The position numbers and the translations under genes are program-made. Positions 10,106 to 54,744 of a DNA stretch of 64,000 nt are shown here, piece by piece (position 1 is the stretch's first letter; the number at the start of each line of letters is the position of its first letter). The notes under the pieces were generated by a model. That model saw only the letters and a program-made list of their open reading frames with translations. It searched no databases and was not told where the DNA came from. The stretch is from the sequence record MH460460.1. The stretch is one strand, 5' to 3'.

Positions 10106-10585
10106 ATGTACACGTTAAATCAAATCGTTCAGAAGATCATTAACCACGTTCCGGACGTGGCAGAAATCAGTCACATCGAATTCATTCATAAAAGCGGTTG
10201 TGATTATGTTTACTTCCAACTGCACGGCATTACTTATCGTGTTGATGCTGGCTTGTCTGTTGAAGAGAAAGACGGTTCGTTTTTAGTTTCTTCTCAGGCC
10301 GCACGAAATATTCAGGCTGTTCTCCGTGGCGAACGTAAAACGCTTATCAATACAGAAGCGCGTAACAAAGCGGTTGACGATATCGTTAACAACGCATCGC
10401 ACATTGAATTGCAGGAAGTTCTGATCGGTATTGGCGAGCCGGAAGAAGGTTCGTTAGAAGAGTTGCAGAAAGCGGTGCGTGATTGGCTGCACGGCGATAG
10501 CAAAATGCTGATCGAGAAAATGGAAATCATCTGGCTGTTCTTCGGTCATGATAAAGCAACTGCATTCAATGAGGCGTTTCGCTAA
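10106..10585 (+). CDS. Hypothetical protein with HeH/SAP-like C-terminal module
   Basis: SHIELQEVLIGIGEPEEGSLEELQKAVRDWL resembles the SAP/LEM/Rho-N pattern. Confidence 0.75.
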   Translation: MYTLNQIVQKIINHVPDVAEISHIEFIHKSGCDYVYFQLHGITYRVDAGLSVEEKDGSFLVSSQAARNIQAVLRGERKTLINTEARNKAVDDIVNNASHIELQEVLIGIGEPEEGSLEELQKAVRDWLHGDSKMLIEKMEIIWLFFGHDKATAFNEAFR

Positions 10586-11100
10586 TGGACATTCAAACGA
10601 TTTTGAAATACACGCCGGAACAGTACAAAGAAAAAGTAACTGTTGCCCTCAACAACTACGCGCCGATTGTTGAACAATTTCAGGAAGAGATTTTCACGCG
10701 ACTTAGAGAAGTGTCAAACAAGCCATACATCACGGCAGCAAGTGAATATCTCTTTCCGGTGAAAAACATTTCTATTTATATGCGCTACGGCGCTGGTCGT
10801 GCTGGTCGCTACGGTCATGATACATTGTGCATTGCGAACATCGAAGTTCCAAAACGTCTGGAACACAAAGGCTTCTTTACTGCGCTGATCTTTTCTCTGA
10901 TTGCAGAATGCCAGCAACGCAAAATCATTCTTATGGTGGAGAATCCGCTGGAAAGATTCTTTCAGGATTTTCTTTTGCGTATTGGTTTTATCTGTCCGAA
11001 CCGAAATGGTTTAGGGATCGGCACTTTCCATCGTCCGATTGACGAAGGCCAGATTAGCCTTTACCCGTTCTACAATATGGATAAAGAACATGCAGAATAA
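10585..11100 (+). CDS. GNAT-fold acetyltransferase-like protein
   Basis: IANIEVPKRLEHKGFF resembles motif A; FLLRIGF resembles motif B. Confidence 0.55.
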   Translation: MDIQTILKYTPEQYKEKVTVALNNYAPIVEQFQEEIFTRLREVSNKPYITAASEYLFPVKNISIYMRYGAGRAGRYGHDTLCIANIEVPKRLEHKGFFTALIFSLIAECQQRKIILMVENPLERFFQDFLLRIGFICPNRNGLGIGTFHRPIDEGQISLYPFYNMDKEHAE

Positions 11101-11515
11101 TTACGCTGTTAATATGGTCGCTGGTTTCATTCGTGAGATAGCGCGAGCGCCGCATCGAATCTTTAACGAAGTTCCAATTCGTTTTGGTTCCGGCGAAACT
11201 GTTGTGTCAGTAGAAAAAGAATCGCACGCAGTTGTTGCAACGTTAGTTGATTGTCCGATTGAATCGCACGAAGAACTTTTAGCATTCGTTAATGCTACGT
11301 TCAAACAGCTTTCCGGATATCGCGCTACGTTGCGTTTTCTTGGCGGTACGGATCTGAATCAATACGCCGACGATCATTTGCATGAACTCACTGAACACTG
11401 GCAATGCAAATATGATGTTGTGCGAACTGGTTATTATTCTCTGGAAGTGTTTCGTTGTCTTCCATACAAAGAAGGGCGAAAAAGTGAAATTTCGCAAACT
11501 GCTGACCCGCAATAA
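11090..11515 (+). CDS. Hypothetical protein
   Basis: ORF overlapping the upstream stop; start approximate. Confidence 0.7.
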   Translation: MQNNYAVNMVAGFIREIARAPHRIFNEVPIRFGSGETVVSVEKESHAVVATLVDCPIESHEELLAFVNATFKQLSGYRATLRFLGGTDLNQYADDHLHELTEHWQCKYDVVRTGYYSLEVFRCLPYKEGRKSEISQTADPQ

Positions 11516-11759
11516 AAACAGGCGCTCCATTTCCGCAAGCTGTTTTATCGGACGTTTGTTTTTCGAAATTGGCGTAGGGCGTGAGTTATGGTACTTCACG
11601 CGCTTTGGTAAAAATAACGATCATCGCATTTATCATTTGGTTCATGTGGGTGTTACGCGTCTGGTGAATCCTAGCGGCGAAGCGCACACTGATATGTTGG
11701 TGATCTCATTTCTCCTGCTGAATATTAAATTTGGCTGGATGACAATTAAGGATAAGTAA
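11484..11759 (+). CDS. Hypothetical protein
   Basis: Fills the gap; GTG 11484 chosen; TAATG overlap with the next gene. Confidence 0.5.
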   Translation: MKFRKLLTRNKNRRSISASCFIGRLFFEIGVGRELWYFTRFGKNNDHRIYHLVHVGVTRLVNPSGEAHTDMLVISFLLLNIKFGWMTIKDK

Positions 11760-11977
11760 TGGCTGATTACACCAAAGAAGTGCTTGAGCAAATGAACATT
11801 GCTCAACTCACTGACATTGCCGACGAGTTTCGTTTGTATGAGGATATGCACGACGACGATGACGCTCCTGATCAATCGGAAATGATTGAAGATATTCTGG
11901 CAGAACAAGAACGTTTGAGTCGTGCTAACGAATATTCTTTGAACCGTCTGAAAAATTCTATTCTTACGCGAGACTAA
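11759..11977 (+). CDS. Small acidic protein, stand-alone HeH/Rho-N-like module
   Basis: LEQMNIAQLTDIADEFRL...DQSEMIEDIL. Confidence 0.7.
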   Translation: MADYTKEVLEQMNIAQLTDIADEFRLYEDMHDDDDAPDQSEMIEDILAEQERLSRANEYSLNRLKNSILTRD

Positions 11978-11978
11978 A

Positions 11979-12737
11979 ATGCCGAAACCTAAAAAACAAA
12001 CTCTGTTCGATTCGCTGCACGCCAAATTCTTCACAAAGAATCCGTGCGCACAAATGCAAGATATTCTGCGCATCGTTGTGGTGAAGCCTGTTAACTCTCT
12101 TCACTTCAAATTGGTTGTGCGTCCTGCTGCATGGAATCAACACGAAGAAAACTTTCGTGAGATTTCTATTAGACGTGCCGAACTGCATTACGTCGATATA
12201 ATCTGCACGCAGGGAACTTTCGCTGATAGCACTCACGCCGAAACAATGGAACAGGCGATGGATGCAATCTATAAATATCTTTCGGCACGAAGCATAGCCC
12301 GAACAAAACTTTTCGACGCTGCTGCTGTTTACGCGCACACGTTGAGAAATAGCGGTGCCGCTGGCGTTTCAGTTTCTGATTGTATTGACCGGATCATCAT
12401 TCGTGATTTATCTGTAAACTACTCTACAGAACTGCACATAACGCAGAAAAGCAACGGCAGAATTACAATGTCGTTGTATGCGAACGGCGAACTTTCATTT
12501 TGTACCGAACCACAAACGGAACAGCAACTAATAGACAAAGCAACTTACGTTTTGTTTGGCGGTGGTCCGGTTGAGGACGCGCTACCTAAATTGCTTCGCC
12601 ACGAAGTTAAAGCCGTGACTCAAATGTTGGAGAAATACAATGTCAATCTTAACGAGGACACAATCACTTTTAAGAAGGAAGATTTTTTCTCCTTTGTTGG
12701 CGATCTTGTTCAGCACAAAGCGCCGGGCAAGAATTAG
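11979..12737 (+). CDS. Hypothetical protein
   Basis: 252-aa ORF in operon context. Confidence 0.8.
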   Translation: MPKPKKQTLFDSLHAKFFTKNPCAQMQDILRIVVVKPVNSLHFKLVVRPAAWNQHEENFREISIRRAELHYVDIICTQGTFADSTHAETMEQAMDAIYKYLSARSIARTKLFDAAAVYAHTLRNSGAAGVSVSDCIDRIIIRDLSVNYSTELHITQKSNGRITMSLYANGELSFCTEPQTEQQLIDKATYVLFGGGPVEDALPKLLRHEVKAVTQMLEKYNVNLNEDTITFKKEDFFSFVGDLVQHKAPGKN

Positions 12738-12897
12738 TTTAGCCGTAGCGTTTGCCCTGTACATTTGCTTTATCCTGTTTGACGCGTTTGTTTATCACGT
12801 CTCACAACCTGTTCGCATGTTCGTTATTTTCATTGCGAGCGTATTCTTCGGTCACGCTTTGTTTCAGGCGTTTCCGATCAGGAGTCGTCGGTCATGA
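12640..12897 (+). CDS. Small two-TM membrane protein (start uncertain)
   Basis: Hydrophobic segments ISLAVAFALYICFILF and MFVIFIASVFFGHALF. Confidence 0.5.
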   Translation: MSILTRTQSLLRRKIFSPLLAILFSTKRRARISLAVAFALYICFILFDAFVYHVSQPVRMFVIFIASVFFGHALFQAFPIRSRRS

Positions 12898-12989
12898 TTG
12901 AGTACGGCGACATAAAATTCCATATGTCAAACCGTCGATTCTGGTTTTGGATCGCGGTTGCACTATTTCTTATAATCTCTCTTAATTGA
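12894..12989 (+). CDS. 31-aa membrane peptide (below the ORF-track cutoff)
   Basis: GGAG RBS, ATGA overlap, MIEYGDIKFHMSNRRFWFWIAVALFLIISLN. Confidence 0.55.
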   Translation: MIEYGDIKFHMSNRRFWFWIAVALFLIISLN

Positions 12990-13003
12990 GGAAAGGTACT
13001 AAA

Positions 13004-13597
13004 ATGAAAAACTTCTTTGCAAAATTCTTCGACCTTCGCGCTTACGACAATTGGAATCTCGGCGCGTTTTTCATTCTCTTCATTGTCTACGCTGTTATGG
13101 ATGTTTTCATTCCGGACGGTTACGAGACTCTGTATCTGATTCTCGCAATCGGGCTTAACATTGCAGTGCTTGTTTTTGATCAGAATGAATTGCGTAAAGC
13201 CGAAGCCAATGTGCCGTCTGCGTGGTGGATTCTTTTGATGCCTGTTTACGTTTATATGCGTGAGAAAAAGAATGGCAAAAAGAATCTGCGCGTCGCTCAT
13301 GCGTATCTGCTGCTTATGCTTGCCTCAATGCTTTTCGGTTTCAGTGCTGATAACGCTCGCAATCCGGAACGCGTTGCCGCCGATGTGTGTCCTATTGTTG
13401 ACACGATTGATCTGTATCGTAACGCTCGCATTACCTGCACGCGTGCATACAACTTCACCGAACAGTATGACGGTTTCTGGAAAGGCCGTGTCCATCTTTC
13501 GAATAACATGATTGTGTCTGTCACTGCTGATTACAATCAGAAAGATGGTTCTGTTTACGTTCAGACTCAGGGGATCTCGGATGACGCAGGTTACTAA
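13004..13597 (+). CDS. Multi-pass membrane protein with a soluble C-terminal domain
   Basis: Four hydrophobic segments in the N-terminal half; RBS before ATG 13004. Confidence 0.8.
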   Translation: MKNFFAKFFDLRAYDNWNLGAFFILFIVYAVMDVFIPDGYETLYLILAIGLNIAVLVFDQNELRKAEANVPSAWWILLMPVYVYMREKKNGKKNLRVAHAYLLLMLASMLFGFSADNARNPERVAADVCPIVDTIDLYRNARITCTRAYNFTEQYDGFWKGRVHLSNNMIVSVTADYNQKDGSVYVQTQGISDDAGY

Positions 13598-13931
13598 GAA
13601 ACGCTACTGCCCGGAAACGGGAGTTGAGTTGCGCGAGGCGCTTGGAATTCCGCGTGTCGTGATCGTATGCCATATGATCGAACGCGAACGCGGTAGCGGT
13701 AAACGTCCTGATGGTTTCGTTTACTGCGAGAGCAAAGAGAACTTGCAGAAGTTTTCAGAGTTTATCTATCAGCAAAAAGTTTCTTCGCGTGGTGAGTGTT
13801 ACTCTGAAATCCTCAACACTGAATTGGTTCAGGTCAGTGAAGAATATCTCAAAGAACTTTCCAAACATCGTGATGATCTTCATCGTCCGTGGATTTGGGA
13901 AAACTCCAGCAAGCACAATGTTATTGTGTGA
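13581..13931 (+). CDS. Hypothetical protein
   Basis: ATG 13581 with purine-rich RBS. Confidence 0.75.
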   Translation: MTQVTKKRYCPETGVELREALGIPRVVIVCHMIERERGSGKRPDGFVYCESKENLQKFSEFIYQQKVSSRGECYSEILNTELVQVSEEYLKELSKHRDDLHRPWIWENSSKHNVIV

Positions 13932-13939
13932 GGTGAGCT

Positions 13940-14290
13940 ATGAAAATTGACAGCACGGTAATACGAGAACTTGTGTTGAAGCAACACGAATTCCGTTCAG
14001 AGTTGTCTAACGCCGACGCGCTGTTGTGTGTATCGCAATTTGCGGCGCTGGCTGCAACTGGTTTTCCGGTTGTTGCTGGTTTTACTATGGAAGAAGTGCC
14101 GGACGGTCAAAAGGGAATTCAAGTTGTATTCCCTGATTACGGAATTCTTTCTCAAGTCACAAAAGAAGATATGCGTGAAGTTGAAAAGCGTCTCGTCGCA
14201 GATTACGATTGGGGAAGTGCTGCAATTGAACGCGGAAGTTTTTACAGCGGATTTAAAGGCCGTTCGTTCCGTTTGATTCTCCTGTATTAA
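13940..14290 (+). CDS. Hypothetical protein
   Basis: GAGGTG RBS. Confidence 0.8.
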   Translation: MKIDSTVIRELVLKQHEFRSELSNADALLCVSQFAALAATGFPVVAGFTMEEVPDGQKGIQVVFPDYGILSQVTKEDMREVEKRLVADYDWGSAAIERGSFYSGFKGRSFRLILLY

Positions 14291-14301
14291 GGAAACAAAA
14301 A

Positions 14302-14550
14302 ATGCCAATGTCATTTCCAGATTTTGATTCACTGAAACGTCGTGCAACTCAACGCAATTTTCGTCAACCTAATCCTGACGAAACTGAACAGGAATTCCGC
14401 GCCGCTTTTGCTGATTACATGTTGGAAGTTGATCGCGTCGAAAGCGCAGAAATCCGAACGGGAAAAGGTTGGGATGAAATGCAAGATGATCCTGCCGCCA
14501 TGTTGCGAGCGATGGGATTAGGCGACGTTGTGGATTCGATTCGCAACTAA
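14302..14550 (+). CDS. Hypothetical protein
   Basis: AAGGA RBS, followed by a terminator. Confidence 0.8.
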   Translation: MPMSFPDFDSLKRRATQRNFRQPNPDETEQEFRAAFADYMLEVDRVESAEIRTGKGWDEMQDDPAAMLRAMGLGDVVDSIRN

Positions 14551-14556
14551 AATAAA

Positions 14557-14587
14557 AGGGAGTGGGCGAAAGCTCATTCCCTTTTTT
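14557..14587 (+). terminator. Intrinsic terminator, identical to 4754-4783
   Basis: Same GAAA-tetraloop hairpin followed by Ts. Confidence 0.85.
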
Positions 14588-27430: not shown

Positions 27431-28042
27431 ATGATGAAACAGATCACTTCCGAAGCAGTAATTGGTCGTTTGCTTAATGAGGGTGAATGGTGGTACGCGC
27501 TGGCTTTGTTCTCGGACAAAGATCTGATGGCGCTGTTGCAGTCAATGGGAATTGAAAACGTAGCCAATCAACCGCGAACTAAAATAGTTCTGGTGCTTTC
27601 GCAGCGTCTTTCAGAGAGCGGTAAATACATTGATTTGATCCGCGATTACTTCAATCAGAATTTCCTTGTGCCGTTTGAAATCCCTACGCACAAATCTGAA
27701 TTGTGGTTTAACTTCGGCGACTGCGAAGCGATGGTATCTCAACGGCTGATTAACAGCGAATACGATATCAATATCGATCCGCAAATTCACAAAGATTTTG
27801 TTCTCGACGCGCTCACCATTGAGCAACTTCGCGAAGTGTATAACATCAACAACATCGCTGATGAAGACTTCAAAGATAAAGATCGTGAATGGCTGATTGA
27901 ACAAATCAACCAAATTGATTTTGTCGAAGAGTACGATAACTTTTTGCGTGACTCCGGCGAACTGTCTCACATCAAAACTGAACACGGTGCAATCATTGAA
28001 TTCTTGTTCGGTTCCGCAATCGTAGAAGAGGATGAAGAATAA
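27431..28042 (+). CDS. Acidic protein with two HeH/Rho-N-like modules
   Basis: SDKDLMALLQSMGI...PRTKIV; TIEQLREVYNINNI...DREWLIEQI. Confidence 0.8.
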   Translation: MMKQITSEAVIGRLLNEGEWWYALALFSDKDLMALLQSMGIENVANQPRTKIVLVLSQRLSESGKYIDLIRDYFNQNFLVPFEIPTHKSELWFNFGDCEAMVSQRLINSEYDINIDPQIHKDFVLDALTIEQLREVYNINNIADEDFKDKDREWLIEQINQIDFVEEYDNFLRDSGELSHIKTEHGAIIEFLFGSAIVEEDEE

Positions 28043-30019
28043 ATGTTAGACTTCAATTTGCAGCTTCCGAAAACTGGTGCGCAGCGTCAAAACGCAATCA
28101 AACAAATTGCGACGCTGTTCGGTTCCCTGATTTCTTCGGAAACAAGTCTGGTAGAAGATCAGACTCCGGAACAAACCGTTCACGCTTTCATGAAAAAGCA
28201 ATTGCGTGCGCCGGAATACCCGATGTTCTTAGCCGTCATTTTTGATGATGGTGAAATTCCGGAAGAGTTTGCAGAATACAATATCGTAACGCTGCAAAAT
28301 GTTTTGGATGATGCCACTTCCGGACGGATGCTTGAGTTGAATGATCTGTTCGCGTTGGAGAGCGATGAGTCGATGATTAAACTGGCTCGCGCAATCGGCA
28401 TTAAAAATCAGATGAGCGGCGTTACTTTCCGTATGGATATCCTGAAAAGGATTTACGAAAACCTGCAAACCTTCGAAAGATTGTATCCGACTACGGAAGC
28501 GTTATCCGAATTTTTCGGTGCGCGTTATGCGTTTGACCGTCAGGCCGAATCTATTCGCTGGCAGCAACTCACTACACGTTTGGACGCCTCGCGTATTATT
28601 GCAGAGAACCGTTCAATGTACGCGAAACTGAGTGGCATGTTCGGACGCTGGTATAACGAAGCGGTGCAATATTTCGCTACTTCTATTTTGGAAGTGGAAT
28701 CATCAACAAGACCTCATATGCTTTCTTCGCGTGTAGCGCAAATCGGGCCACAAAATATTCTGCGTAAACTTTTCGATCTCGGTCTGCTGTCTCGCGAAAA
28801 ATTCGAAGAGTTTATTAAATTCGAAAACATCGAATTCGATGCCGTGTTGAAAGCAATCGTGCAAGGTTGGTTCGATGCGTTCGACGGCAAAGAACAGGAT
28901 ATCGTTTCCGTTGATAGTATGAGCAATGATGCTCGCACTATCATGGAACAGTTTGTCTCTGAATATCGTTGCGACGATGAAGAAGACGACGAAGACGACG
29001 AAGATGATTACGATGAAGAGGAAGAAGAGGAGGACGACGAAGACGAAGAAGACGACGAAGATGACGCGCCTCCCGTCAAAAAAGTCGCTCGCCGTAAAGT
29101 TCTGAACGAAGAAGACGACGACGAAGACGACGAAGACGACGAAGAGGACGAAGAGGACGAAGAGGATGATGAAGAAGAATCCGGCGCGGCTACGCAAAAA
29201 GAATTACTCGGACTTCTGAGCGAAGATATCGACGTTAACGAGCATAGCCTTTCCTACTGGCTCAATGCGAAGACCGAAGATGTTCGCCGTGCGCTGATCG
29301 ATTCCGGAACTGCTGCGTCTCATATCGTAAAAAGTATGCGCCATTATCAACTGCTGGAAGTTATGTCAGAAGAAGCGGATTTGTGCATGGATGAAGTTTT
29401 CTCGTATTCCGATATAGCGAGCGCTGCATACAAAAACTGGATGGAGAACTGGCGTAGTCGTTTCGAAACTTCCGGCTATAAACTGAAAGTTCTTTCTGCC
29501 GTTGTTCGCGAACTGGTTTCCGGAATGGAACTTGCCGACTACACAACGGAAGAAATGGAGAATCAGATCGAGTCTTACATTGAGTGCATCGAATCTGTTA
29601 GCGGTCTGTATACGTTTGCCGATAAGTTTATCGCTGCGGTAGACAAATACAAAATGCAATCGGGGTTCAATATCGATCCGGTTTCCAACGTACCTTATCC
29701 GGCTCCTGCGTCAGAGCAACACCGCAAACTGATGGTAGATGCGGTCGCCTCCAAAGTTGTCGATCCGTATCGCGCACGTAACATGAGCGAATCTGAACTC
29801 CGCGCTGCAATGGCAGAAGCGGAAGCGATGAAAGAAGAAACTCCGGTTGCGAAAGTAACTAACGAAAACTTTCGTGAAGTGATTCCTACTCTTTCGCGTC
29901 AGAGTCTGATCGCAGAACTGGCGGCGCGTGGCTATAGCGATAACAGCCTGCGTAAACTCGGTGCTCCGCGCCTCGCAGAAATGTTCTTGAATGCTATGGA
30001 ACGTCTCGTTAATAAATAA
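28043..30019 (+). CDS. Large acidic protein with two D/E tracts and HeH-like modules
   Basis: 658 aa; tracts such as DDEEDDEDDEDDYDEEEEEEDDED; C-terminal LSRQSLIAELAARGY...LGAPRLAEMF. Confidence 0.9.
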   Translation: MLDFNLQLPKTGAQRQNAIKQIATLFGSLISSETSLVEDQTPEQTVHAFMKKQLRAPEYPMFLAVIFDDGEIPEEFAEYNIVTLQNVLDDATSGRMLELNDLFALESDESMIKLARAIGIKNQMSGVTFRMDILKRIYENLQTFERLYPTTEALSEFFGARYAFDRQAESIRWQQLTTRLDASRIIAENRSMYAKLSGMFGRWYNEAVQYFATSILEVESSTRPHMLSSRVAQIGPQNILRKLFDLGLLSREKFEEFIKFENIEFDAVLKAIVQGWFDAFDGKEQDIVSVDSMSNDARTIMEQFVSEYRCDDEEDDEDDEDDYDEEEEEEDDEDEEDDEDDAPPVKKVARRKVLNEEDDDEDDEDDEEDEEDEEDDEEESGAATQKELLGLLSEDIDVNEHSLSYWLNAKTEDVRRALIDSGTAASHIVKSMRHYQLLEVMSEEADLCMDEVFSYSDIASAAYKNWMENWRSRFETSGYKLKVLSAVVRELVSGMELADYTTEEMENQIESYIECIESVSGLYTFADKFIAAVDKYKMQSGFNIDPVSNVPYPAPASEQHRKLMVDAVASKVVDPYRARNMSESELRAAMAEAEAMKEETPVAKVTNENFREVIPTLSRQSLIAELAARGYSDNSLRKLGAPRLAEMFLNAMERLVNK

Positions 30020-40051: not shown

Positions 40052-40885
40052 ATGTCTGCTGTAACAAGTCAGAACGATTTTGATGCAGTGCGTACTGCGC
40101 TGGAGAGCATTTTAAAAGCTAATGAAGATGCTCGCCGTGGATTGTACGAGAAGGGTGAGTTGTTTAACGACAACTTTTTGAAGTTTTCCGTTTCTGATTT
40201 ACATAAAAGTTTGCAGAATACTCCGCGTAGAAAACTGCCTCAGATTGTTGAGAAAGTTTTAGGCGATTTCAACTTTAGAGCAATTCACGGAGATTGGGCG
40301 CTCGTTAAACACGATGCTCCCGACTTCACTTTAATTGAATTGCCTCACTCTGCAACGAATGTCGTTGGCGTTACTTTTTCAAAAGATTCTTATAAAGGAA
40401 AACTTGTCGAGTTAGGCGATACTGATTTTGCGGAACCTGTCGTTAAGGAGAAAGTAAAACCTCCTGCTAAACAGCGAACGAAAAAAGTTATCGCTAAGAA
40501 GGAAGAAGTAAAAAGTAATTCCGTTGTTCAGGAAGAAGTTGAACCTGAACATGTAGAGAATGCTCCTGCCTCTGTATTGGAAGTTAAAAAGAGAAGGGCG
40601 GCTGTTGAAAAACTTTCACCGGAAGATCGGCGTCAGTCTTCTGGCACTTATCAACAATTAAAATTCGTTTTGCTTTCTATGACAAAAGAAACGCTAGACG
40701 TTTTGGCAGAAACATTGAACATTGGCGAGTTGGAACCTACGGTGCGCGGGGCGGTAGAAGATATTCTCCGCTTCATGGATTTCGAATCTATTCGCGATGC
40801 AGCGGATAATATGGGAATCACACTGAAAGCTCGCAACAACGCAGACGCAGCATTGTTAGAATTTCTAATCGTCCAATCTAAATAA
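40052..40885 (+). CDS. Hypothetical protein, paralog of 42340..43083, with C-terminal HeH-like modules
   Basis: HGDWALVKHDAPDFTLIELPHSATN vs YGSWVFVDWDSPDCLFIQLPKTSTN. Confidence 0.85.
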   Translation: MSAVTSQNDFDAVRTALESILKANEDARRGLYEKGELFNDNFLKFSVSDLHKSLQNTPRRKLPQIVEKVLGDFNFRAIHGDWALVKHDAPDFTLIELPHSATNVVGVTFSKDSYKGKLVELGDTDFAEPVVKEKVKPPAKQRTKKVIAKKEEVKSNSVVQEEVEPEHVENAPASVLEVKKRRAAVEKLSPEDRRQSSGTYQQLKFVLLSMTKETLDVLAETLNIGELEPTVRGAVEDILRFMDFESIRDAADNMGITLKARNNADAALLEFLIVQSK

Positions 40886-42339: not shown

Positions 42340-43083
42340 ATGCCTAACGAAAAAACTTCTGTTCCTTCTCGCAAAGAATTCGCGGCATCTAGAGCGGCGG
42401 CAAAGAAAGTGAAATCTGCTCCTGCTTCTGTTCGTGCGAAAAATTCAACGAAAGATGTTAGTCGCGAAACTGACGCTGATCGTTTGGATAAATTTGTGAT
42501 TGCGGTTCTGGAAGAATGGCGTGTAGCCAAAGAGAATAATCTCGCTGGCTCCGATCAAAACATCATCAAAGTGAGTATGCGCGAAATCAAGTTGCTCATG
42601 TCTCGAACTTTGAAAAACACGCGTGTATCTCGGCTGCACGATCTGATTAACGATACGTTATCCGGATTGAACATCGCTGAGGTTTACGGTTCGTGGGTGT
42701 TCGTTGATTGGGATTCTCCAGACTGTCTGTTTATCCAACTGCCGAAAACATCGACCAACGCGATTCGTGTTCGCGTTGCCAGTAAAGCGGGAAGCGCTGA
42801 ATTCTCGCTCCAAAAATCCACTGAGCAATTGATTGAAGATCGATTCCGTGTGGAAGAGGACGAGGACGAAAATCAAACCGTTGTCGATGACGGAGACATT
42901 GATCGTGAATATGACGGTCGCCCTGAGAATGTTCGTAAGACAGAGAAGCAATTGCGGTCTTGGACGCTTGAGCAATTACAAAACTTCGTAATTGAAAACA
43001 AGATTGAAGTCTGGGCCGGTGCGGATTATAACTACGAGACACTTCTTGTTGCCGTGTTGGATTTCAAAACTAAACAGGCATAA
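42340..43083 (+). CDS. Hypothetical protein, paralog of 40052..40885, with basic N-terminal arm and C-terminal HeH-like module
   Basis: AAGGA RBS; C-terminal LRSWTLEQLQNFVIENKI...YETLLVAVL. Confidence 0.85.
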   Translation: MPNEKTSVPSRKEFAASRAAAKKVKSAPASVRAKNSTKDVSRETDADRLDKFVIAVLEEWRVAKENNLAGSDQNIIKVSMREIKLLMSRTLKNTRVSRLHDLINDTLSGLNIAEVYGSWVFVDWDSPDCLFIQLPKTSTNAIRVRVASKAGSAEFSLQKSTEQLIEDRFRVEEDEDENQTVVDDGDIDREYDGRPENVRKTEKQLRSWTLEQLQNFVIENKIEVWAGADYNYETLLVAVLDFKTKQA

Positions 43084-44701: not shown

Positions 44702-46315
44702 ATGGCAATTGCAACCTCTACCAAACTGATCGGCAAAAACATCGTTCTGCTGGACGGCACCAAAACCAAAATCACTGACGCAATGGCAACTGGTTATAAA
44801 GTTGCTGATCGTACTGTTCGCGTTGCGTCAAAGCAAGTTGCTAAGAAAGGCGCTTGCTATTACGAAATCCCGGTTACGTCTCTGCGTGAACTGATCGATT
44901 CCGGTGAAGGTTATGTTTCTTTCGCTGACAAAGCGATGCAGAAAAAAGTCGGCACTGATGCTTTCCTTGAAAAACCTGCTAAAACTTCTGGCCGCAAACC
45001 GAAAGAAGAGAAAACTTCTGGCCGCAAACCGAAAGAAGAGAAAACTTCTAACGTGCGTCCGAAACGTGGTAGCAAACCTACCAAAGAAGAAGACGAAGCC
45101 GAAGAAAAATCATCACGTCGCGTTAAACGTCGCGGCAATAGCGATGCAGGTTTCGGCGCTCTCGCTGACTTCCTGATCAACGGCGGTAACAGCAAGAAGA
45201 AAGTTTCTCTCTCCACAATCGATCAGGATCTGGCGACTGTTCTTACTGAACGTCTGGTTAGCACGGTTAAAGATACCTCGCTGGCTAAATTCGACCGCAA
45301 CAATGCGCTGATCGAAAACGCATTTGATGTTGGCTACTCAACTGAATTCGATGCGACTGGCGGTGACGTTCGCGTAACGCTCAATATCAAATACGCGCTG
45401 GAACAACCGGAACCGGAAGAAGTAAGCGGCGGTTTCGAAATCTCTCCGGAACTGGCGAAGAAAATCAAAGCGCGTGTTGGTAAAACTGTTGGCAAAAAAC
45501 TGGCTGCGGCAATCGCTGGACACCTCGGCGTTGAAGCAAGCGATATGACAGCGGGAACTCTGCTGGTTCGTGAAGGTGAGGATGGTCAGTTTGTTTTCTG
45601 CGGCGCAAGCAGCGAAGACAATAACAAAGCTGTTCTGTTCAACACTGAAAGCGAAAAATTCCGTACTGTAGGCGGCGCGTCTCTGGCTAACTACTCCATC
45701 GTCGAAGAAGACGAAGAGGAAGAGGAAGACGAAGAAGACGAAGACGAAGAAGAAATTGAAGAGGAAGAGGACGAAGACGAAGACGACGGCGAAGCCGAAG
45801 ACGACGATGCCGAAGACGATTCCGAAGAAGGCGAAGATGACGCGGAAGGTGAAGACGACGATTCCGAAGATGCTTTCGAATACGCTTCCGTAAATAAAAA
45901 GCAACTGGCGAACGTAGACAAAAAGATCACGGCTAAAAATCTGCCGATGCTGTCTAAACTTTGGGGCGTGCCGCAAAGCGCTCTGATTACTGGTCTGAAA
46001 CTGACAGACGGCGATGATACTTTTGTGTTTATCGGTATGGACGAAGACGGCGATCTGCTGGTTGTCGAAGAAGGCGCGAAGGAAGTTGTAGCATTTGACG
46101 CTGACGATATCTCAAGCCTGTCTGGTTACTCTCCGGTTGTTGGTGAAGCCGAAGACGACGCAGAAGAAGATGGCGAAGATTTCGAAGATGACGGCGAAGA
46201 CTACGACGATATGGACATTGACGAACTGCGCGATGTTGTAGTTCAGAAAGGTCTGGCAAAAGTTCGCGCCGCCGAAAACATGACGGAGAAAAAACTCCGC
46301 GCTCTGCTGAAATAA
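44702..46315 (+). CDS. Modular protein: basic N-terminal region, two repeated domains, D/E tracts, C-terminal HeH-like module
   Basis: AGGAG RBS; 537 aa; C-terminal DDMDIDELRDVVVQKGL...MTEKKLRALLK. Confidence 0.9.
   Translation: MAIATSTKLIGKNIVLLDGTKTKITDAMATGYKVADRTVRVASKQVAKKGACYYEIPVTSLRELIDSGEGYVSFADKAMQKKVGTDAFLEKPAKTSGRKPKEEKTSGRKPKEEKTSNVRPKRGSKPTKEEDEAEEKSSRRVKRRGNSDAGFGALADFLINGGNSKKKVSLSTIDQDLATVLTERLVSTVKDTSLAKFDRNNALIENAFDVGYSTEFDATGGDVRVTLNIKYALEQPEPEEVSGGFEISPELAKKIKARVGKTVGKKLAAAIAGHLGVEASDMTAGTLLVREGEDGQFVFCGASSEDNNKAVLFNTESEKFRTVGGASLANYSIVEEDEEEEEDEEDEDEEEIEEEEDEDEDDGEAEDDDAEDDSEEGEDDAEGEDDDSEDAFEYASVNKKQLANVDKKITAKNLPMLSKLWGVPQSALITGLKLTDGDDTFVFIGMDEDGDLLVVEEGAKEVVAFDADDISSLSGYSPVVGEAEDDAEEDGEDFEDDGEDYDDMDIDELRDVVVQKGLAKVRAAENMTEKKLRALLK
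44981..45049 (+). repeat. Perfect 30-bp coding tandem repeat, 2.3 copies (KTSGRKPKEE)
   Basis: AAAACTTCTGGCCGCAAACCGAAAGAAGAG at 44981 and 45011, partial copy at 45041. Confidence 0.95.
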
Positions 46316-46381: not shown

Positions 46382-47314
46382 ATGAAAATGGCTATCACTC
46401 CTAACAAAGATTTGGTTAACGTTGTTGTTCGTCTGCTGGATGGCAAAACTTCTCGCATCACTGGCATTACTAAAACTGGTTACACGGTTGAAGGTTCTGA
46501 TAAGCAAATTCCGATGACGGAACTTGTGCGTAAAGGCCGCGTGTTGCAGCAACTCGATCCGGCGAAGCTGAAAGAAATTCCGGCTGAACAAACTTATCTG
46601 ATGAGCGACGGCTATCTGCATATCCATACCCGCGATGCAATGCGCCGCATCAAGAAAGGCGAGACGGTTGATATCCCGCCGTCAAATTCTGAATGGCTGC
46701 GCAAAACCAAAACGGTGAAGGTTGTGAAAGTGAAAGGCGAATCTAAGCCTAAAAAGATTACGCCGAACAAACCTGTTCGCGCTGACGCTTCTAAAGTTAA
46801 GGCTCCGAAGCGTCTTAAAACTGACGCGCAGAAAACTAAAAAGGTTGTGGCAAAAGCTGCGCCTAAATCAACTCCGGTTGATCGTAGCGCCGAAACTGCT
46901 GAGACGTTGTTCCTAGTAATCGAAAACGCTCGCACGAATCGCAAAGCGTTTAAAGAGTTTAAAGCGATTGTCTCGGCTGCGATGGGTGTTACGGCAAAAG
47001 ATCTGCCGGATACTGCAAGCGAGATCATCGAAAAATTCGGCGCTGCGAAAGTACGCAAAGGTCTGGCGGCTCTGTCTGAGCATTTCAATCGCCGCCGTGC
47101 GGAACTGAGTTTGCCTCGTAGCTTGAAAGCGTTTATCTCAAGCGGTCGCTTAACTCTGACTCCTGCGCAATTCCGTCAAGTGCTGGAAGTAATCGCTCCG
47201 ACGATTCCGAAAGAGATTGTTGCTGACGTTGCTAAGTATTATTTCAACGGCGAATTCGTTATCAGCAAAACCCCGGATCGCAACACCACGAAAAAATCTA
47301 ACGGTGGCAATTAA
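46382..47314 (+). CDS. Basic (Lys-rich) protein whose N-terminal domain is homologous to that of 44702..46315
   Basis: RLLDGKTSRITGITKTGYTV vs VLLDGTKTKITDAMATGYKV. Confidence 0.85.
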   Translation: MKMAITPNKDLVNVVVRLLDGKTSRITGITKTGYTVEGSDKQIPMTELVRKGRVLQQLDPAKLKEIPAEQTYLMSDGYLHIHTRDAMRRIKKGETVDIPPSNSEWLRKTKTVKVVKVKGESKPKKITPNKPVRADASKVKAPKRLKTDAQKTKKVVAKAAPKSTPVDRSAETAETLFLVIENARTNRKAFKEFKAIVSAAMGVTAKDLPDTASEIIEKFGAAKVRKGLAALSEHFNRRRAELSLPRSLKAFISSGRLTLTPAQFRQVLEVIAPTIPKEIVADVAKYYFNGEFVISKTPDRNTTKKSNGGN

Positions 47315-47676: not shown

Positions 47677-47684
47677 GAACGATC

Positions 47685-49401: not shown

Positions 49402-52349
49402 TGAATTCCTCTCAAACTTTCGGAACCGCCGCACATGCGGCAACTGTTACGGAACAGAATCTGAATGCAGGTTCTCCGGCAACTAAAAGCACGGTAATTG
49501 TTGTGCTGTGTCCGACTGTAAACGGCAACCAAATTTTCCGTGCGGAAAATAGCGGCAATGTTTCTCAAACAGTCGCGCAGGGTAAAGCGCTTAATCGTCT
49601 GACTGATCTTCTGGCGATGGCAGGCGATAACGCTGGTCATGAACTGATGAGCGCTGCCGCTTCTATCGACGAGCGCTGCAAGCTGAAAGACAGTGCTGCG
49701 ATGATTCTTCGCTATACTGTAAATGGTAGTGTAGAACGTCTCCAGAAAACTTTGTCTGAGGCGTTGTTTAAGGTCGGCGAAAAAGCTGCAAATGATAATA
49801 CTACGTTAGCGTCGTATGCCAGTCGTTTTGGTGTTCACGCAATCGCGGTATCTGCGGAAAGTAATTCATACGCAATCGTTACAGCGATTCGTGATCAACT
49901 GGAAGCGTTCGACCGCAACGAAAGCAATTTTATCGTTGCGCAGAAAGCAAGTGTTGAGCAAATCAATGCTCCGGTTATCGACTGGTCTGCAACTTCCGCA
50001 AACGTTGTTCTGGAAGGTGCTGCGTTAAGTTTTGTAGTTCGCTCGGAAAAAACCCGCGTGAATTTCCTGATTAATCCTATTAAGGGGAATAATGTTGTGA
50101 GTAACGATCAGAAAGCTCTGTCTGTTTTCAGCCGCGAAAATCAGGCGTCCGTAACTATGGAAGAAAAAGTCGCTGCACTCGAAGCTCTCGGTTACGATCT
50201 CGGCGCTATGCCGGATGAAGAAATTGCGCTGTCCTACGATAGCGAGCGCGTTGATTTTCTGGAAGGCGCTGGCGTTGAAGTAAACTCCGGCGACGAAGGC
50301 GAAACTGACGACGCCGAAGAATCGGAAGAAGATTCCGAAGAAGGCGAAGAGGAAGAGGAAGAAGAGGAAGACGATTTCTCCGCTTCTGAAACTCTGGCAG
50401 AAATTCTGACTAACGCCCAACTGGATCGCGCTCAACTGAAAAAGCTGGTGTTCCTCGCAGGCGGTAAAGTGTTTACCTCCGACACCGAAGAAACTCTGAC
50501 GGTGAAACTGCTGGAACTGGTCGAAGATAAAGACTACAGCGAATTCTTCCAGTTTGCGCTGGACGCTAATGAACGTCTCGGCGGCGTTGAAGGTTTTGCT
50601 GATTTCCTTCACAACGAAAGTGTTCTCGCTACCGACGAAGAAGAATCTGAGGAAGAAGATTCCGAAGATGACGGCGACGAAGGCGACGATGCCGAAGGCG
50701 ACGACGATGATTCCGAAGATGAGGATGATTCGGAAGACGAAGATGGCGAAGATGAAGACGACGAAGACGAAGAAGATCTTTCCTTCAACTCTGTTGTCGA
50801 ATTCATCGAACTGATCGGCGGCGATCTGAATCGCGAAGTTATTCGCGCAATTGCTCGCTCCGAAAACTTCGGCCTGAAAACTTACAAGAACGAAGACGCT
50901 GCTGCAATCTTCGAACGTGTAGTTGAAGTGCTGAACAATAACGAACTTTCTCCGGAAGATTTCGAACAACTGATTCACGATCTCGCGCAGATCGAAGTTG
51001 TTGCCGCTGCCTATCCGGAATGGGCTGAGTACGAAGTCAATCCGACTGACTACACTGAACTGTTTAACTTCGAAGGCGGTTCCCTGTCTCACGAACAGCG
51101 CGTTGCCGCTCTCGAAGCTGCGGGTAACGATCTCGAAGGTATGGGCATGGTTGCCGTGCTGAAACTCTTCGAAGAGTATCGCCGCGAAAATGGTTACGGT
51201 CAGGAAAGCGAAGAAGCTGCTGACGAAACTTACGCGCTGGATTCTGATGCGGAAGACGAAGGCGAAACTGACGAAGGCGACAACGCCGACGAATCTTCCG
51301 ACGAAGAGGAATCCGAAGAGGAAGAATCTGAGGAAGAAACCGAAGAAGAAAACGACGAAGCGTTTGTTTCCGATTCTTCTGAAAGTGATATCGGTACTTT
51401 CCTGCGTGTTCGTCAGGAACAAATGCTGCTGGTCAACTTCACGCTGACTGATCGCAGTACGTTTGAAGATCTCGCCGAAGAACTGCGCGATCAAAACGGT
51501 GTTGATTACCGCGTACCAATCAACATGAACGACGAAGCCGAAGGTTCTATGTACCTGCCGCTGACTGTCGCGAGCGATCTGCTGTCTGGTTCTGCTGCGC
51601 TGCCGTTCATGTCTGATCGCAAAACTTTCAACGTGGAAGACTACGCTGAAAAACTGGCTAACACTATGCGCGGTCAAATTTCTGCGCTGCTGTATGAAGG
51701 CCGTCTGGAAGCTGGACAAGATCCGTACACTAGCGGTCTGGTGCTCGGTGATTTCGTTGAAGACGAAGACGAAGATCTGGATGAAGACGAACTGAGTTCT
51801 GACTATCTGAACGAACTGGTCGGCGATCACATTCCGATGGCGTCTCTGTACAACGCACATGTTGGCGTGCGTCCGGTTGTAGTTGATACCGAAAGCACTG
51901 TTCTGAATACCATCGTGCTTAACATTGCAATGCCTTGCATTTGGGGCATCGGCAAGAAGAAAGTAAAAGATCTGGTAATCAGCACTTACAACCGTGTGCT
52001 TGCGCACATCGGCGAAACCGATATTAAAGTTTATGTTGGTTTCACGCTGAATTCCGGTTCACTGGTTTCTGATGAAAACCTGCAATTGGTTGTTCGTTCT
52101 GTTGGCGAAATGGCAAGCGAAGAAATCGCGGTGCATTCTTTCTCTTCTAACGATGTTCAGCGCATCGAAGAAAGCGAAGATCTGGTTGAAGCCGCGCATT
52201 CTGTCGGCACCGAAAACCTGCCGCTGGCGCTGCTGTCCTCCGGTATCGCTGACGCTGCATTTGCGAACGGCGGTGATCTGATTGTGATTCTGTCTCCGGC
52301 GGGTGATAGCGAAGACTACTCCGACGACGAAGACGAATCCGAAGAGTAA
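49401..52349 (+). CDS. 982-aa very acidic modular protein
   Basis: Several D/E tracts alternate with duplicated helical modules. Confidence 0.9.
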   Translation: MNSSQTFGTAAHAATVTEQNLNAGSPATKSTVIVVLCPTVNGNQIFRAENSGNVSQTVAQGKALNRLTDLLAMAGDNAGHELMSAAASIDERCKLKDSAAMILRYTVNGSVERLQKTLSEALFKVGEKAANDNTTLASYASRFGVHAIAVSAESNSYAIVTAIRDQLEAFDRNESNFIVAQKASVEQINAPVIDWSATSANVVLEGAALSFVVRSEKTRVNFLINPIKGNNVVSNDQKALSVFSRENQASVTMEEKVAALEALGYDLGAMPDEEIALSYDSERVDFLEGAGVEVNSGDEGETDDAEESEEDSEEGEEEEEEEEDDFSASETLAEILTNAQLDRAQLKKLVFLAGGKVFTSDTEETLTVKLLELVEDKDYSEFFQFALDANERLGGVEGFADFLHNESVLATDEEESEEEDSEDDGDEGDDAEGDDDDSEDEDDSEDEDGEDEDDEDEEDLSFNSVVEFIELIGGDLNREVIRAIARSENFGLKTYKNEDAAAIFERVVEVLNNNELSPEDFEQLIHDLAQIEVVAAAYPEWAEYEVNPTDYTELFNFEGGSLSHEQRVAALEAAGNDLEGMGMVAVLKLFEEYRRENGYGQESEEAADETYALDSDAEDEGETDEGDNADESSDEEESEEEESEEETEEENDEAFVSDSSESDIGTFLRVRQEQMLLVNFTLTDRSTFEDLAEELRDQNGVDYRVPINMNDEAEGSMYLPLTVASDLLSGSAALPFMSDRKTFNVEDYAEKLANTMRGQISALLYEGRLEAGQDPYTSGLVLGDFVEDEDEDLDEDELSSDYLNELVGDHIPMASLYNAHVGVRPVVVDTESTVLNTIVLNIAMPCIWGIGKKKVKDLVISTYNRVLAHIGETDIKVYVGFTLNSGSLVSDENLQLVVRSVGEMASEEIAVHSFSSNDVQRIEESEDLVEAAHSVGTENLPLALLSSGIADAAFANGGDLIVILSPAGDSEDYSDDEDESEE

Positions 52350-52358
52350 TCTGTAAAT

Positions 52359-52392
52359 AAATGGTGTGGGGCAAATTGCTCTGCACCATTTT
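52359..52392 (+). terminator. Probable terminator
   Basis: AAATGGTGTGGGGC-AAATT-GCTCTGCACCATTT. Confidence 0.7.
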
Positions 52393-52403
52393 AAGGATTC
52401 CTA

Positions 52404-53156
52404 ATGTCTGATACGCAAATTGAAGTTTTACATCGGACACTGTTTTCAACGCGTCAGTCACTTGATGAAAACATCATGGCACGTCGCGCAACCGAAAAGG
52501 TGTTGGATGAGCGCCTGAGTGAATTAGGCCGCTGTCAGGTTCAATTAAGCATTGCTCAAGAGCGAATTCTGAATCTCCAGACTGAATATAATAATGTTGT
52601 GGAGAAATCGGAAAGCAAAGCGAAGGATATGGAAGAAACTTTCCGTACCTCCGAAGCAAAGCTGAAAGAAGAAATAGTAATTCTGAACGACAAGATTTCG
52701 GAACTGCGTGCGCTCTGCCGTGATATGCCGGAAACTCCTGCGGAACAACTGCTGGAAAACGTACTGCATAAAACGATGGCGTATCTGCATTCGACTGTGG
52801 TGTATTTCGCTGCCCTCACGTTGAATTCCAATCCGCAATCTCTGGCTGGTAAAGAGTTGCTTGCGCTGACGAAAAAGCAAACCCTGAATCCGGGCAAATT
52901 GTTTTCACTATCTGTAAAGGAAAAGCAGATAGTCTTAGAAAACATTCGTTCGTTTGTGCAAGCAGAACTTGATAATTCTGAATACACAAACATCCGGGCG
53001 GTAATTACTGCAATGACCGCTTCGGATAAATCGTGGAAGACGTTTCGCGATAGCCTGAAAAATTCTAAGGTGCTTTTCTCACTCGCATCTGACAAACTGG
53101 AATTTGACTCTGCGGTAAACGCGGTCGTTGAATTCATTCTTGAACAATTGAAGTAA
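52404..53156 (+). CDS. Coiled-coil hypothetical protein
   Basis: AAGGA RBS; long heptad-like N-terminal half. Confidence 0.8.
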   Translation: MSDTQIEVLHRTLFSTRQSLDENIMARRATEKVLDERLSELGRCQVQLSIAQERILNLQTEYNNVVEKSESKAKDMEETFRTSEAKLKEEIVILNDKISELRALCRDMPETPAEQLLENVLHKTMAYLHSTVVYFAALTLNSNPQSLAGKELLALTKKQTLNPGKLFSLSVKEKQIVLENIRSFVQAELDNSEYTNIRAVITAMTASDKSWKTFRDSLKNSKVLFSLASDKLEFDSAVNAVVEFILEQLK

Positions 53157-53178
53157 TGAACGGGAGTTCGAAATAATC

Positions 53179-53757
53179 ATGGCTAAATCAAAGTCCACCT
53201 CACTGGTTCCGAAACGCATTGAGCGTATCACGAAAAAAGCTGGTGCAATCGCGCAGGTCAAATCCAAACAAACCGATCTGGCGCACGATATCGAAATCTC
53301 GACTCGCGGCGCACACGAAGTTTCCGGTTTCGTGATCGAAGTTACCGCTGACGATAGCGTAACGATCCGCCACAAGAAAGGCGCTGGTAGTTCCAAACAG
53401 ATCGTAAGCACGTTTACCAAAAACCAGATCATTAGCTTTATCGGTGAAGCTGGCGGTATGGGGCAACTGCTGGTTGACGCGTACATGGTTGTTCAGGTAA
53501 TTCGCGGTCAAACTGTAAAAGTTAAAGACGATGTGATTATCGCAACTGATATTCAGACTGGCGAAGTCACTCGCATCGCAACCAACATTCCGGGCTACGA
53601 TGTTCGCGCAATTGTTGACGAAGCTGTTGCTTCTAAAAAGTACGGCACTCCGATTGCAGTTGAAAAGAAAAAAGGCGCGGGCAAGGTAGAAAAAATTGCC
53701 AAAGGCGGCAAAGATAAGTCCGGTAAAAAGAAAAAGAAGTCTGACGAAAACTTCTAA
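53179..53757 (+). CDS. Basic beta-rich protein, possibly Sm/SH3-like fold
   Basis: Lys-rich termini; EVSGFVIEVTADDSVTI...KNQIISF recalls Sm-fold spacing (weak). Confidence is for the ORF. Confidence 0.8.
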   Translation: MAKSKSTSLVPKRIERITKKAGAIAQVKSKQTDLAHDIEISTRGAHEVSGFVIEVTADDSVTIRHKKGAGSSKQIVSTFTKNQIISFIGEAGGMGQLLVDAYMVVQVIRGQTVKVKDDVIIATDIQTGEVTRIATNIPGYDVRAIVDEAVASKKYGTPIAVEKKKGAGKVEKIAKGGKDKSGKKKKKSDENF

Positions 53758-53772
53758 TTCGGTTCCGGCCTG

Positions 53773-53853
53773 AATCTGTAAAGTAACGTTGAAGGACAGA
53801 ATCTGTAAATCAATTCTGTCAGACAGAAACTGTAAACAGTTAATGTCAAACGC
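53773..53853 (+). repeat. Degenerate 27-bp tandem repeat x3, each unit starting AAWCTGTAAA
   Basis: CTGTAAA at 53776, 53803 and 53830; GACAG ends units 1 and 2. Confidence 0.75.
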
Positions 53854-53961
53854 CACTGATTAATTTCGGTGGCGTCAGTTAAAAACATTTTTCTCTTAAT
53901 CTGTAAATAGTAATTGAACAAAGCGTTCATTACTGAACTTTCCTAAAGGATAAAATGAATC

Positions 53962-54744
53962 ATGGCTAAAGCAAAGAAAACCTCTAACGTAGCAATGGAA
54001 ACTCTGGCTAAAATGGCTGGCCTGCTTGTAGAAGCGGCTGCCGATGCAGAAGTTGCAGAACTTCTCGCCGAAGCCGGTCTGACCGTTGCCGCTAAAGGTA
54101 AAGGCAAAGCTAAAGCTGCTAAAGCTGAACCGAAAGCAAAAGGCGGCAAGAAAAAGAAAGTAACTGCCGCACAAATCGTTGAAGCCATCGAAGATGGTGA
54201 GTCCATCGAACTCGAAGGCACCGACGAAGAAGTTCTGCGCGAAGCCGTGGTCAAAGCGAAACTGACCAGTAAGAAAAAAGCGGCGAGCCTTGATGAAGAG
54301 GAACTGCTGGAACTGATTCAGGAAGCGTTGGGTTCTTCTGATGACGAAGAAGAAGACGACGAAGACGAAGACGACGAGGATGATTCTGATGAAGATGATT
54401 CCGACGACGAAGACGACGAAGACGAAGACGACGAGGATGATGAAGACTCGGACGACGACGAAGACGACGAAGACGGCGACGACGAAGATGATGAGGACGA
54501 CGAGGACGACGAAGACGAGGACGAAGATGACGAAGATGAAGATCGTGATCTGGAAGACCTCGACGAAGACGAACTCCGCGCGTTAGCCATCGAAGAAGGC
54601 GTGTTCACCAAAGCGCAGGCCAAAAAGAAAGACGAAGATGCACTCCGCGAAGCGCTGGAAGCTCACTTCGCTGGTGACGAAGATGAAGACGAAGACGACG
54701 AAGACTTCGACGACGAAGACGACGAAGACGAAGACGACGAGTAA
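53962..54744 (+). CDS. Bipolar protein: K/A-rich segment, two HeH-like modules, very long D/E tracts
   Basis: ~65-70 nearly pure D/E residues; modules DEEVLREAVVKAKL...DEEELLELI and DEDELRALAIEEGV...DEDALREAL. Confidence 0.9.
   Translation: MAKAKKTSNVAMETLAKMAGLLVEAAADAEVAELLAEAGLTVAAKGKGKAKAAKAEPKAKGGKKKKVTAAQIVEAIEDGESIELEGTDEEVLREAVVKAKLTSKKKAASLDEEELLELIQEALGSSDDEEEDDEDEDDEDDSDEDDSDDEDDEDEDDEDDEDSDDDEDDEDGDDEDDEDDEDDEDEDEDDEDEDRDLEDLDEDELRALAIEEGVFTKAQAKKKDEDALREALEAHFAGDEDEDEDDEDFDDEDDEDEDDE

Follow-up and report, generated by a model that had tools for sequence, protein, structure and literature searches.

The last 64 kb of the genome of Dickeya phage vB_DsoM_JA13, a jumbo myovirus of the genus Salmondvirus (Dickeya is a potato pathogen), encode a protein module of ~40 amino acids (aa) that, judging by sequence comparison, is real and was undescribed until now. 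We identified four copies of this core module in three very acidic proteins, g306, g314 and g276, the copy in g276 being a probable one. The whole stretch of DNA analysed (hereafter the window) is 64,000 nucleotides long and matches positions 190062-254061 of the 254,061-base-pair record MH460460.1 with 100% identity. A sequence-only reading of the window had proposed the expansion of a single helix-extension-helix (HeH) module, resembling SAP, LEM and Rho_N domains, over eight proteins encoded by the open reading frames (ORFs) JA13_238, 242, 275, 276, 302, 306, 311 and 314 (here g238 to g314). All eight are annotated as ‘hypothetical protein’; a PHROGs search matched only families of unknown function, and no description of these proteins was found in the literature on these phages and on HeH or SAP domains in phages. 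The peptides quoted in that reading are all present in ORFs that start where it had placed them. Coordinates are window positions unless a record or locus is named, and all modules, segments and tails described below lie on the plus strand, which carries nearly all genes of the window.

The consensus of the core module is LDLxDLDEDELRxxVVExxLxTxKKAKKLDEDELRELLEEHF. One copy forms the extreme C-terminus of g306 (JA13_306, aa 501-537; 46202..46312), right after a tract of aspartate and glutamate residues (poly-D/E), and two are found in g314 (JA13_314), at aa 84-124 (54211..54333) and, flanked by two poly-D/E tracts, at aa 197-237 (54550..54672). In hhalign profile comparisons these three copies (g306C, g314a and g314b) match one another with probabilities of 97.7-98.7% (98.7% between the two g314 copies, 97.7-98.1% between g306C and the g314 copies), and the core sequences align gap-free, 15 of them at first and 69 later. 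With a hidden Markov model (HMM) of the 69 sequences, the three copies score 54-59 bits (54 for g306C, 59 for g314b), whereas nothing in 40 shuffled proteomes exceeds 8.9. Independently, aa 78-120 of g314 match the C-terminal end of the g306 PHROG (phrog_33433, positions 517-559) with an expectation value (E) of 0.005. The proteome scans covered 336 ORFs genome-wide, with 101 proteins in the window and 235 in the rest of the genome, and across the 254-kb genome the core HMM accepted only the four copies. The fourth, absent from the list of the sequence-only reading, is located at aa 558-596 of g276 (JA13_276; 29714..29830) and scores 10.0 bits at aa 567-593; its nine-sequence family matches the g306C family in hhalign (86.2%, E 4.9e-6), and its motif ARTMSxSELRA is kept in homologs that are 40% identical overall. 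A candidate fifth copy at the C-terminus of JA13_014/015, which together with g276 came next in the HMM ranking after the three firm copies, was rejected, since by the core HMM only helix 1 is present there.

Orthologs were taken from AD1, Y3 and SNUABM_5 and from 20 IMG/VR loci retrieved with the g311 alignment; locus searches by the g306 or g276 protein reached only JA11 and JA29. All 20 related loci carry orthologs of g302, g306, g311 and g314, and the C-terminal copy of g306 is conserved gap-free in each of them. Conservation of the core copies extends across phages whose g306 and g311 orthologs share just 30-40% identity with those of JA13. The syntenic 50-kb regions of AD1, Y3 and SNUABM_5 yielded no orthologs of g238, g242, g275 or g276; the Logan and JGI protein sets provide additional g275 and g276 homologs with 40-65% identity. 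Three IMG/VR metagenome contigs (L015, L016 and L017; 111-257 kb) represent uncultured relatives with a g311 ~60% identical to that of JA13 and show that the Salmondvirus-like clade extends beyond the four isolates.

The distribution of the module speaks for its portability. Among 19 orthologs of g302, the C-terminal tail is absent, of type 1 (WTLxQLQxF...LIAxI, the JA13 form) or of type 2, and type 2 belongs to the core family (hhalign 94% to g306C). Tails of all types sit after a conserved globular part and an acidic linker, and a portable tag would be expected to vary in this way. When 1.84 billion (1.84e9) representative proteins were scanned in full by HMMER with the core alignment, only 37 clusters were found at E<=1e-3; their members carry one to four module copies, contain 17-50% aspartate plus glutamate (D+E) and have the module mostly at or near the C-terminus. 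One of the distant matches is the counterpart of g306 in a syntenic jumbo-phage contig of 222 kb; another, a four-copy protein encoded on a 20-kb phage contig, directly follows PDDEXK_1 and AAA_24 genes and is located near DNA polymerase A and dUTPase. SAP is the sole recurrent Pfam family in 32 distant module proteins (2/32, E 3.6e-4). A protein of a different kind, P0050 (L037:3081-4181), also matches the core profile with its N-terminus (aa 15-54, E 1.5e-4); it is Gag-like (DUF1759) and lies beside RVT_1 (weak) and integrase-type Pfam matches, like a eukaryotic long terminal repeat retroelement, and its match is probably a convergent, unrelated SAP-like helix pair.

Run on g314 with an alignment of 21 sequences, AlphaFold2 (AF2) gives confident predictions for aa 66-125 and 197-237 only (predicted local distance difference test, pLDDT, 83-89). 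In the model of each g314 module, helices of 10, 5 and 12 residues are separated by loops of 5 and 3 residues; the helices span aa 89-98, 104-108 (the short one) and 112-124 in g314a (pLDDT 83-89) and aa 202-211, 217-221 (short) and 225-236 in g314b (pLDDT 85-88). Disorder is predicted for the poly-D/E tracts of g314, where pLDDT is below 60, and for its Lys-rich N-terminal tract. Column statistics over 104 module instances revealed acidic flanks (DLxDLDEDEL, DEDEL) around a basic connector, xTxKKAKK, with K/R at 30-60% in five connector positions. The earlier argument that acidic copies would bind a common protein rather than DNA therefore fails for the core module: only its flanks are acidic, whereas the connector (KKAKK) is conserved and basic, which weakens the step from acidity to a protein target.

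In the reading that we favour, with modest confidence, these orphan proteins are built like beads on a string and carry a portable module of ~40 aa that is likely a divergent HeH tether to nucleic acid or to a shared target. In several of them, disordered poly-D/E linkers would connect small helical units or domains, and a basic tract rich in Lys, Ala and Pro often lies close to the N-terminus; one kind of bead is the core module, found at the end of g306, twice in g314 and probably at aa 558-596 of g276. It is predicted to begin with an acidic N-cap and a helix of 10 residues, to continue with a conserved basic connector of 13 residues (xTxKKAKK[LM]) that includes one helical turn, and to end in a 12-residue helix (DEDELRELL). 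Because its length and register resemble those of LEM and SAP, the module is most likely a divergent HeH unit. It may attach its acidic carriers to a polyanionic or otherwise shared target, and the likeliest candidate would be nucleic acid, contacted via the basic connector by analogy with SAP and LEM-like domains; the poly-acidic linkers could serve as spacers, intramolecular competitors or DNA mimics. Within the JA13 genome, the window forms the early/DNA-metabolism arm, where small orphan genes are interspersed with methylases, UvsE and dUTPase, followed by the topoisomerase II subunits and, just past the record origin, by the DnaB gene. The core copies are located upstream of the topoisomerase II and DnaB genes; a role on DNA would suit such surroundings of replication, recombination and topoisomerase genes, although they are no proof of it. 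No transfer RNA or transfer-messenger RNA genes were found by ARAGORN in window positions 1-64000.

We class the core module as HeH-like rather than as a member of SAP or LEM. When 34 ortholog segments were compared with Pfam, the most frequently matched families were LEM (PF03020; 8 segments, best E 0.0023), SAP (PF02037; 6 segments, best E 3.8e-4, a value that partly sums two partial matches) and Ish1 (PF10281; 3 segments, best E 0.0018). The SAP and LEM matches belong to g306-type modules and begin at module position 2 and profile position 1; the in-register alignment reaches position 21-26 of SAP or position 19 of LEM, covering helix 1 and the G-L turn, and the second half is unaligned. 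Orthologs reach at most 20.4 bits against SAP and 16.9 bits against LEM (positions 1-19 of 40), below the respective gathering cut-offs of 23.9 and 24. With LEM (emerin, LAP2, MAN1) the module has in common the length of ~40 aa and, in its predicted structure, the succession of helix 1, a hydrophobic/G turn, a connector of ~11-13 residues and helix 2, its N-terminal half being in register with LEM positions 1-19 in 8 of the 34 segments; the modelled lengths of 10, 13 and 12 residues fit the two-helix layout of LEM, and Foldseek gave no LEM match. It differs from LEM in its Lys-rich connector with a predicted helical turn, in the unaligned second half and in its phage-encoded, poly-acidic carrier proteins; to our knowledge, the LEM partner BAF does not exist in bacteria. 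The first-helix signature L..L...(R/K)G-L, which aligns in register, and the basic residues before helix 2 are shared with SAP (SAF-A, PIAS, Ku70, Tho1), whereas AF2 places a 13-residue connector holding a short helix between the two helices, and a profile search of the PDB returned no SAP chain. Connectors measure 11-12 residues in LEM and about 6 in SAP, so that of the module is nearer to LEM and approximately twice as long as in SAP. Likeness to Rho_N (PF07498) and Ish1 was found in other segments (g242, the g302 tail and g275a), which profile comparison shows to be unrelated to the core module. As a general analogy, long poly-D/E tracts alongside basic tracts and small helical, DNA-associated domains recall HMGB1, nucleoplasmin and DEK, eukaryotic chromatin proteins with acidic tails, and the phage DNA mimic Ocr of T7; Ocr is a folded mimic, whereas the poly-D/E tracts of JA13 are predicted to be disordered.

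Several observations weigh against a divergent HeH tether to nucleic acid. Pfam searches with the whole proteins and with the ten listed segments alone gave no match above cut-off, the JA13 core copies matched nothing, and the alignments obtained with orthologs comprise mainly helix 1 and the turn. The core profile retrieved nothing from the PDB, neither Rho nor SAP nor LEM, and Foldseek found no significant PDB match for the whole g314 model. With a short helix modelled in its connector, the unit could be a three-helix mini-domain and not a classical HeH. The net charge of the whole module ranges from -5 to +2, which makes a protein partner equally possible, and no co-occurring enzymatic or known DNA-binding domains were found in the 32 distant module proteins. 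Finally, the g276 copy, with its 10 bits and 86% hhalign probability, is probably but not firmly a member of the family.

That one HeH module was expanded over eight window proteins as an address tag for one common protein is quite improbable and, at the level of sequence, largely refuted. The underlying pattern does recur in a loose form: [DST]xx[EQ]Lxx[LIVM]...[STD]xxxL has 9 matches in the 101 window proteins versus 3.1 ± 1.6 in 200 shuffles (P = 0.005, ~3-fold), an enrichment confined to the window, as the other 235 proteins of the genome have 8 matches with 6.9 expected (not significant). With G made obligatory, as in the strict form, the pattern is not enriched (2 observed, 0.6 expected, not significant). 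All four listed segments that were modelled with AF2 are predicted to form two helices of 10-12 residues with a connector of 10-13 residues, in agreement with the proposed shape, but Foldseek recovered no Rho, SAP or LEM. The announced likeness to these domains was likewise borne out in part: the best weak Pfam matches of five separate segment families fall repeatedly within the SAP/LEM/Ish1/Rho_N/Fan1_SAP group, but none reach the gathering cut-off and most span helix 1 and the turn. A swappable tail in g302 would also suit an address tag. Against this, the ten listed segments have a mean pairwise identity of 19%. HMMs of the other proteins’ segments, leaving one protein out at a time and run on the 336-ORF proteome and 20 locally shuffled proteomes, recovered only g306 (7.8 bits, 0.15 expected per proteome), and the remaining seven of the eight proteins scored at background level. 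The joint profile of all ten segments has an AAA+ lid helix-loop-helix as best PDB match (FtsHi4, E 0.005) and is therefore generic; no Rho, SAP or LEM chains were matched by it. With ortholog-enriched profiles, hhalign clustered g306C, g314a and g314b only: every other listed segment stayed below 17% to these three, and the only other link between two listed segments connects the g302 tail and g275b (62%). Taken as a whole set, the segments show no significant mutual similarity, an outcome named beforehand as speaking against a single family; moreover, g238 and g275 are single globular domains, and the basic connector of the core speaks against an acidic, hence protein-binding, tag. What stands is a portable two-helix unit in the otherwise unrelated g306, g314 and g276, placed behind poly-acidic linkers and in many cases C-terminal, and for this core family alone the idea of a shared address tag is plausible. 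Outside the core, the listed segments split into no fewer than five separate small sets or singletons: the g302 tail with g275b, g275a with aa 98-152 of g276 (weak, hhalign 29%), units A with C and units B with D of g311, and the singletons g276c (the C-terminal segment of g276), g242 and g238. They share merely a generic signature, two consecutive N-capped amphipathic helices, and some look HeH-like, i.e., the g302 tail (Ish1), g242 (Rho_N) and g275a.

The pattern itself amounts to a helix N-capping box followed by hydrophobic positions, and it could be argued that every segment, even in the core, matches the others by chance or composition, through amphipathic helices beginning with the common S/T/D-x-x-E capping box. 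The unrelated helix-loop-helix found in the PDB by the joint profile and the failure of most segments in the leave-one-out test agree with this view, which is nevertheless very improbable, as the core copies score far above anything in the shuffled proteomes (54-59 versus at most 8.9 bits), match each other with hhalign probabilities of 98%, are conserved across phages with orthologs only 30-40% identical and recur as a discrete unit in 37 distant clusters. Chance is thus refuted for the core; it is the best description of g238 and possibly of g276c and g311 unit B as ‘copies’ of it. A possibility of some weight, although on the unlikely side, is that the core module is real and binds no nucleic acid, being instead a protein-protein docking or oligomerisation unit that recruits its carriers, e.g., to a nucleoid protein of the host or to a component of the phage replisome or topoisomerase. 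LEM, the Pfam family most frequently matched (8/34 segments), binds a protein (BAF); the g314 modules are net acidic, the module is C-terminal and swappable, and multiple copies per protein would give avidity. However, the gene context points to no partner, no co-varying neighbour gene was found, and the conserved KKAKK connector may resemble the DNA-contacting loop of SAP and LEM-like domains. It is also highly unlikely that the poly-acidic module proteins are virion-internal or ejected, with modules binding packaged DNA inside the capsid. Two further poly-acidic proteins are indeed encoded in the structural arm, beside capsid genes, but they lack the module, whereas the four window proteins are placed among replication and nucleotide-metabolism genes, in the strand block opposite to the structural genes; our literature search found no virion proteomics for these genes.

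Returning to the tether reading, the Lu11/PaBG/Y3/Salmondvirus lineage of jumbo phages contains mostly genes without known function, and four ‘hypothetical proteins’ now have a defined architecture of a basic tract, poly-acidic linkers and a portable two-helix module, while the core profile singles out a family that is rare and restricted to phages (37 clusters). Should the module tether its carriers to DNA or to a partner, it would offer a handle on where these abundant acidic proteins act, with nucleoid remodelling, DNA mimicry and replisome organisation as possible roles. A more far-reaching proposal, distinctly unlikely in our view, is that module and poly-D/E linker together define an undescribed class of phage proteins sharing one docking site, be it DNA, the phage topoisomerase/replisome or a host nucleoid protein. 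If true, this would be an address-tag system by which jumbo phages that build no phage nucleus organise a replication compartment or remodel the nucleoid, and the swappable C-terminal tails of g302 would be alternative addresses. The relevance is mainly for annotators of function-less jumbo-phage proteins, with the lesson that a two-helix-N-cap pattern can by eye mimic a repeated domain while mixing one real family with unrelated helix pairs.

The segments outside the core differ in character. The type-1 tail of g302 (JA13_302; WTLEQLQNF...LLVAVLDF, 42955..43080) follows an acidic linker; type-1 tails of its orthologs match Ish1 (positions 2-33) with a best E of 0.0018 and 19.0 bits, below the cut-off of 26.6, and the JA13 tail itself has no Ish1 match. 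A profile combining this tail with g275b found no match in the PDB. In g275 (JA13_275), g275a (27506..27610) is modelled as helices 29-38 and 49-60 with a 10-residue loop (pLDDT 81-89) and g275b (27806..27916) as helices 130-139, 145-149 and 152-161. Their local shape fits the description given in the sequence-only reading, but by the model both are parts of a larger fold and not modules: g275 is predicted as one compact globule of 13 helices (pLDDT 76, predicted template modelling score 0.71), and its family of 11 homologs is conserved end to end, without linkers. The score of g275a against Ish1 (E 0.2, 12.4 bits) is below the cut-off of 26.6, no Pfam match of the HeH group was found for g275b and the 11 homologs, and Foldseek of the g275 model against the PDB and BFVD gave no significant match except g275 itself.

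The small protein g242 (JA13_242, 72 aa; 11780..11908) contains a Rho_N-like helix 1 and turn, a very acidic connector and a second helix. Rho_N is the top match of its family, of which three members match in one register (E 0.017, 0.078 and 6.4e-4); the best score of 20.1 bits, at positions 2-21 of 43, is below the cut-off of 24.9. No further domain, such as the RNA-binding or ATPase part of Rho, is present, and hhalign found no profile link to the other segments. The g238 segment (10394..10489) lies inside a single PHROG domain (phrog_14362, aa 3-151 of 159, E 7.5e-21), has no Pfam match and remains below 4% in hhalign to all other segments; it thus appears to be a part of one 150-aa domain, and its status as a module is not supported. 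Separate from the core copy of g276, g276c (aa 606-658; 29858..30016) contains the segment listed originally and is the most conserved part of the protein, 34 of 53 columns being invariant among homologs only ~40% identical overall. It is SAP-like by eye only: no hhalign link to any segment and no PDB match were found for g276c, and the c, x and n segments of g276 have no Pfam match of the HeH group.

Between its acidic linkers, g311 contains four small conserved units: A (aa 253-290; 50157..50270), B (aa 339-377; 50415..50531), D (aa 460-513; 50778..50939) and C (aa 555-596; 51063..51188). Unit B corresponds to the segment listed originally and is conserved in all 20 orthologs; A, which was not listed, is conserved in orthologs and a paralog of C (hhalign 92%), and D is an insertion limited to the Salmondvirus-like clade (6 of 21 orthologs), with 66.6% to B. 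Unit B stays below 2% to everything else, no g311 unit is linked to the core, and 38 module segments had no Pfam match of the HeH group. In the g311 ortholog of JA11 (L013:10001-12970), an 8-aa tandem duplication, VDFLEGAG, occurs right after unit A relative to JA13. Another feature not listed originally is the conserved tail of g299 with paired helix-turn-helix-like units (40664..40882), for which no profile link to any family was found; one ortholog of this tail weakly matches Fan1_SAP (E 0.054), and g299 (40052-40885) is paralogous to the central domain of g302 (BLASTP E 2e-11).

Poly-D/E tracts were defined as 15-aa windows with at least 70% D+E, and of the six poly-acidic proteins encoded genome-wide, four belong to the window. 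The linker of g314 (aa 123-205) is encoded at 54328..54576 on the plus strand and the other g314 tract at 54667-54741; further tracts are located at 45692-45871 and 46145-46210 in g306, at 28958-29191 in g276 and at 50307-50390, 50628-50786 and 51288-51362 in g311. In the g276 ortholog of JA29 (L034:10001-12163), the acidic region contains three tandem copies of ‘DEDEDEDVTPPSK.PR.KPLP’ versus one in JA13 (28958-29191), which suggests that linkers evolve by repeat expansion. Lys/Ala/Pro-rich basic tracts precede the acidic linkers at 54091-54159 (g314 aa 44-66), 44975-45151 (g306 aa 92-150) and 42364-42459 (g302 aa 9-40), and the basic-acidic-module layout is reminiscent of histone-H1-like tails. 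Outside the window, JA13_130 (98841-100799) and JA13_140 (109914-111878 of the record) in the structural arm are poly-acidic and carry no core module, and JA13_222, a ‘putative ssDNA-binding protein’ (MH460460.1 187420-188607), ends in alternating poly-D/poly-K blocks. Lastly, g306 (44702-46315) and g307 (46388-47314) have a common N-terminal domain of ~64 aa (E 3e-5), and g306 contains an internal duplication of ~85 aa (aa 245-335 versus aa 392-480, 32% identity, E 5e-4).

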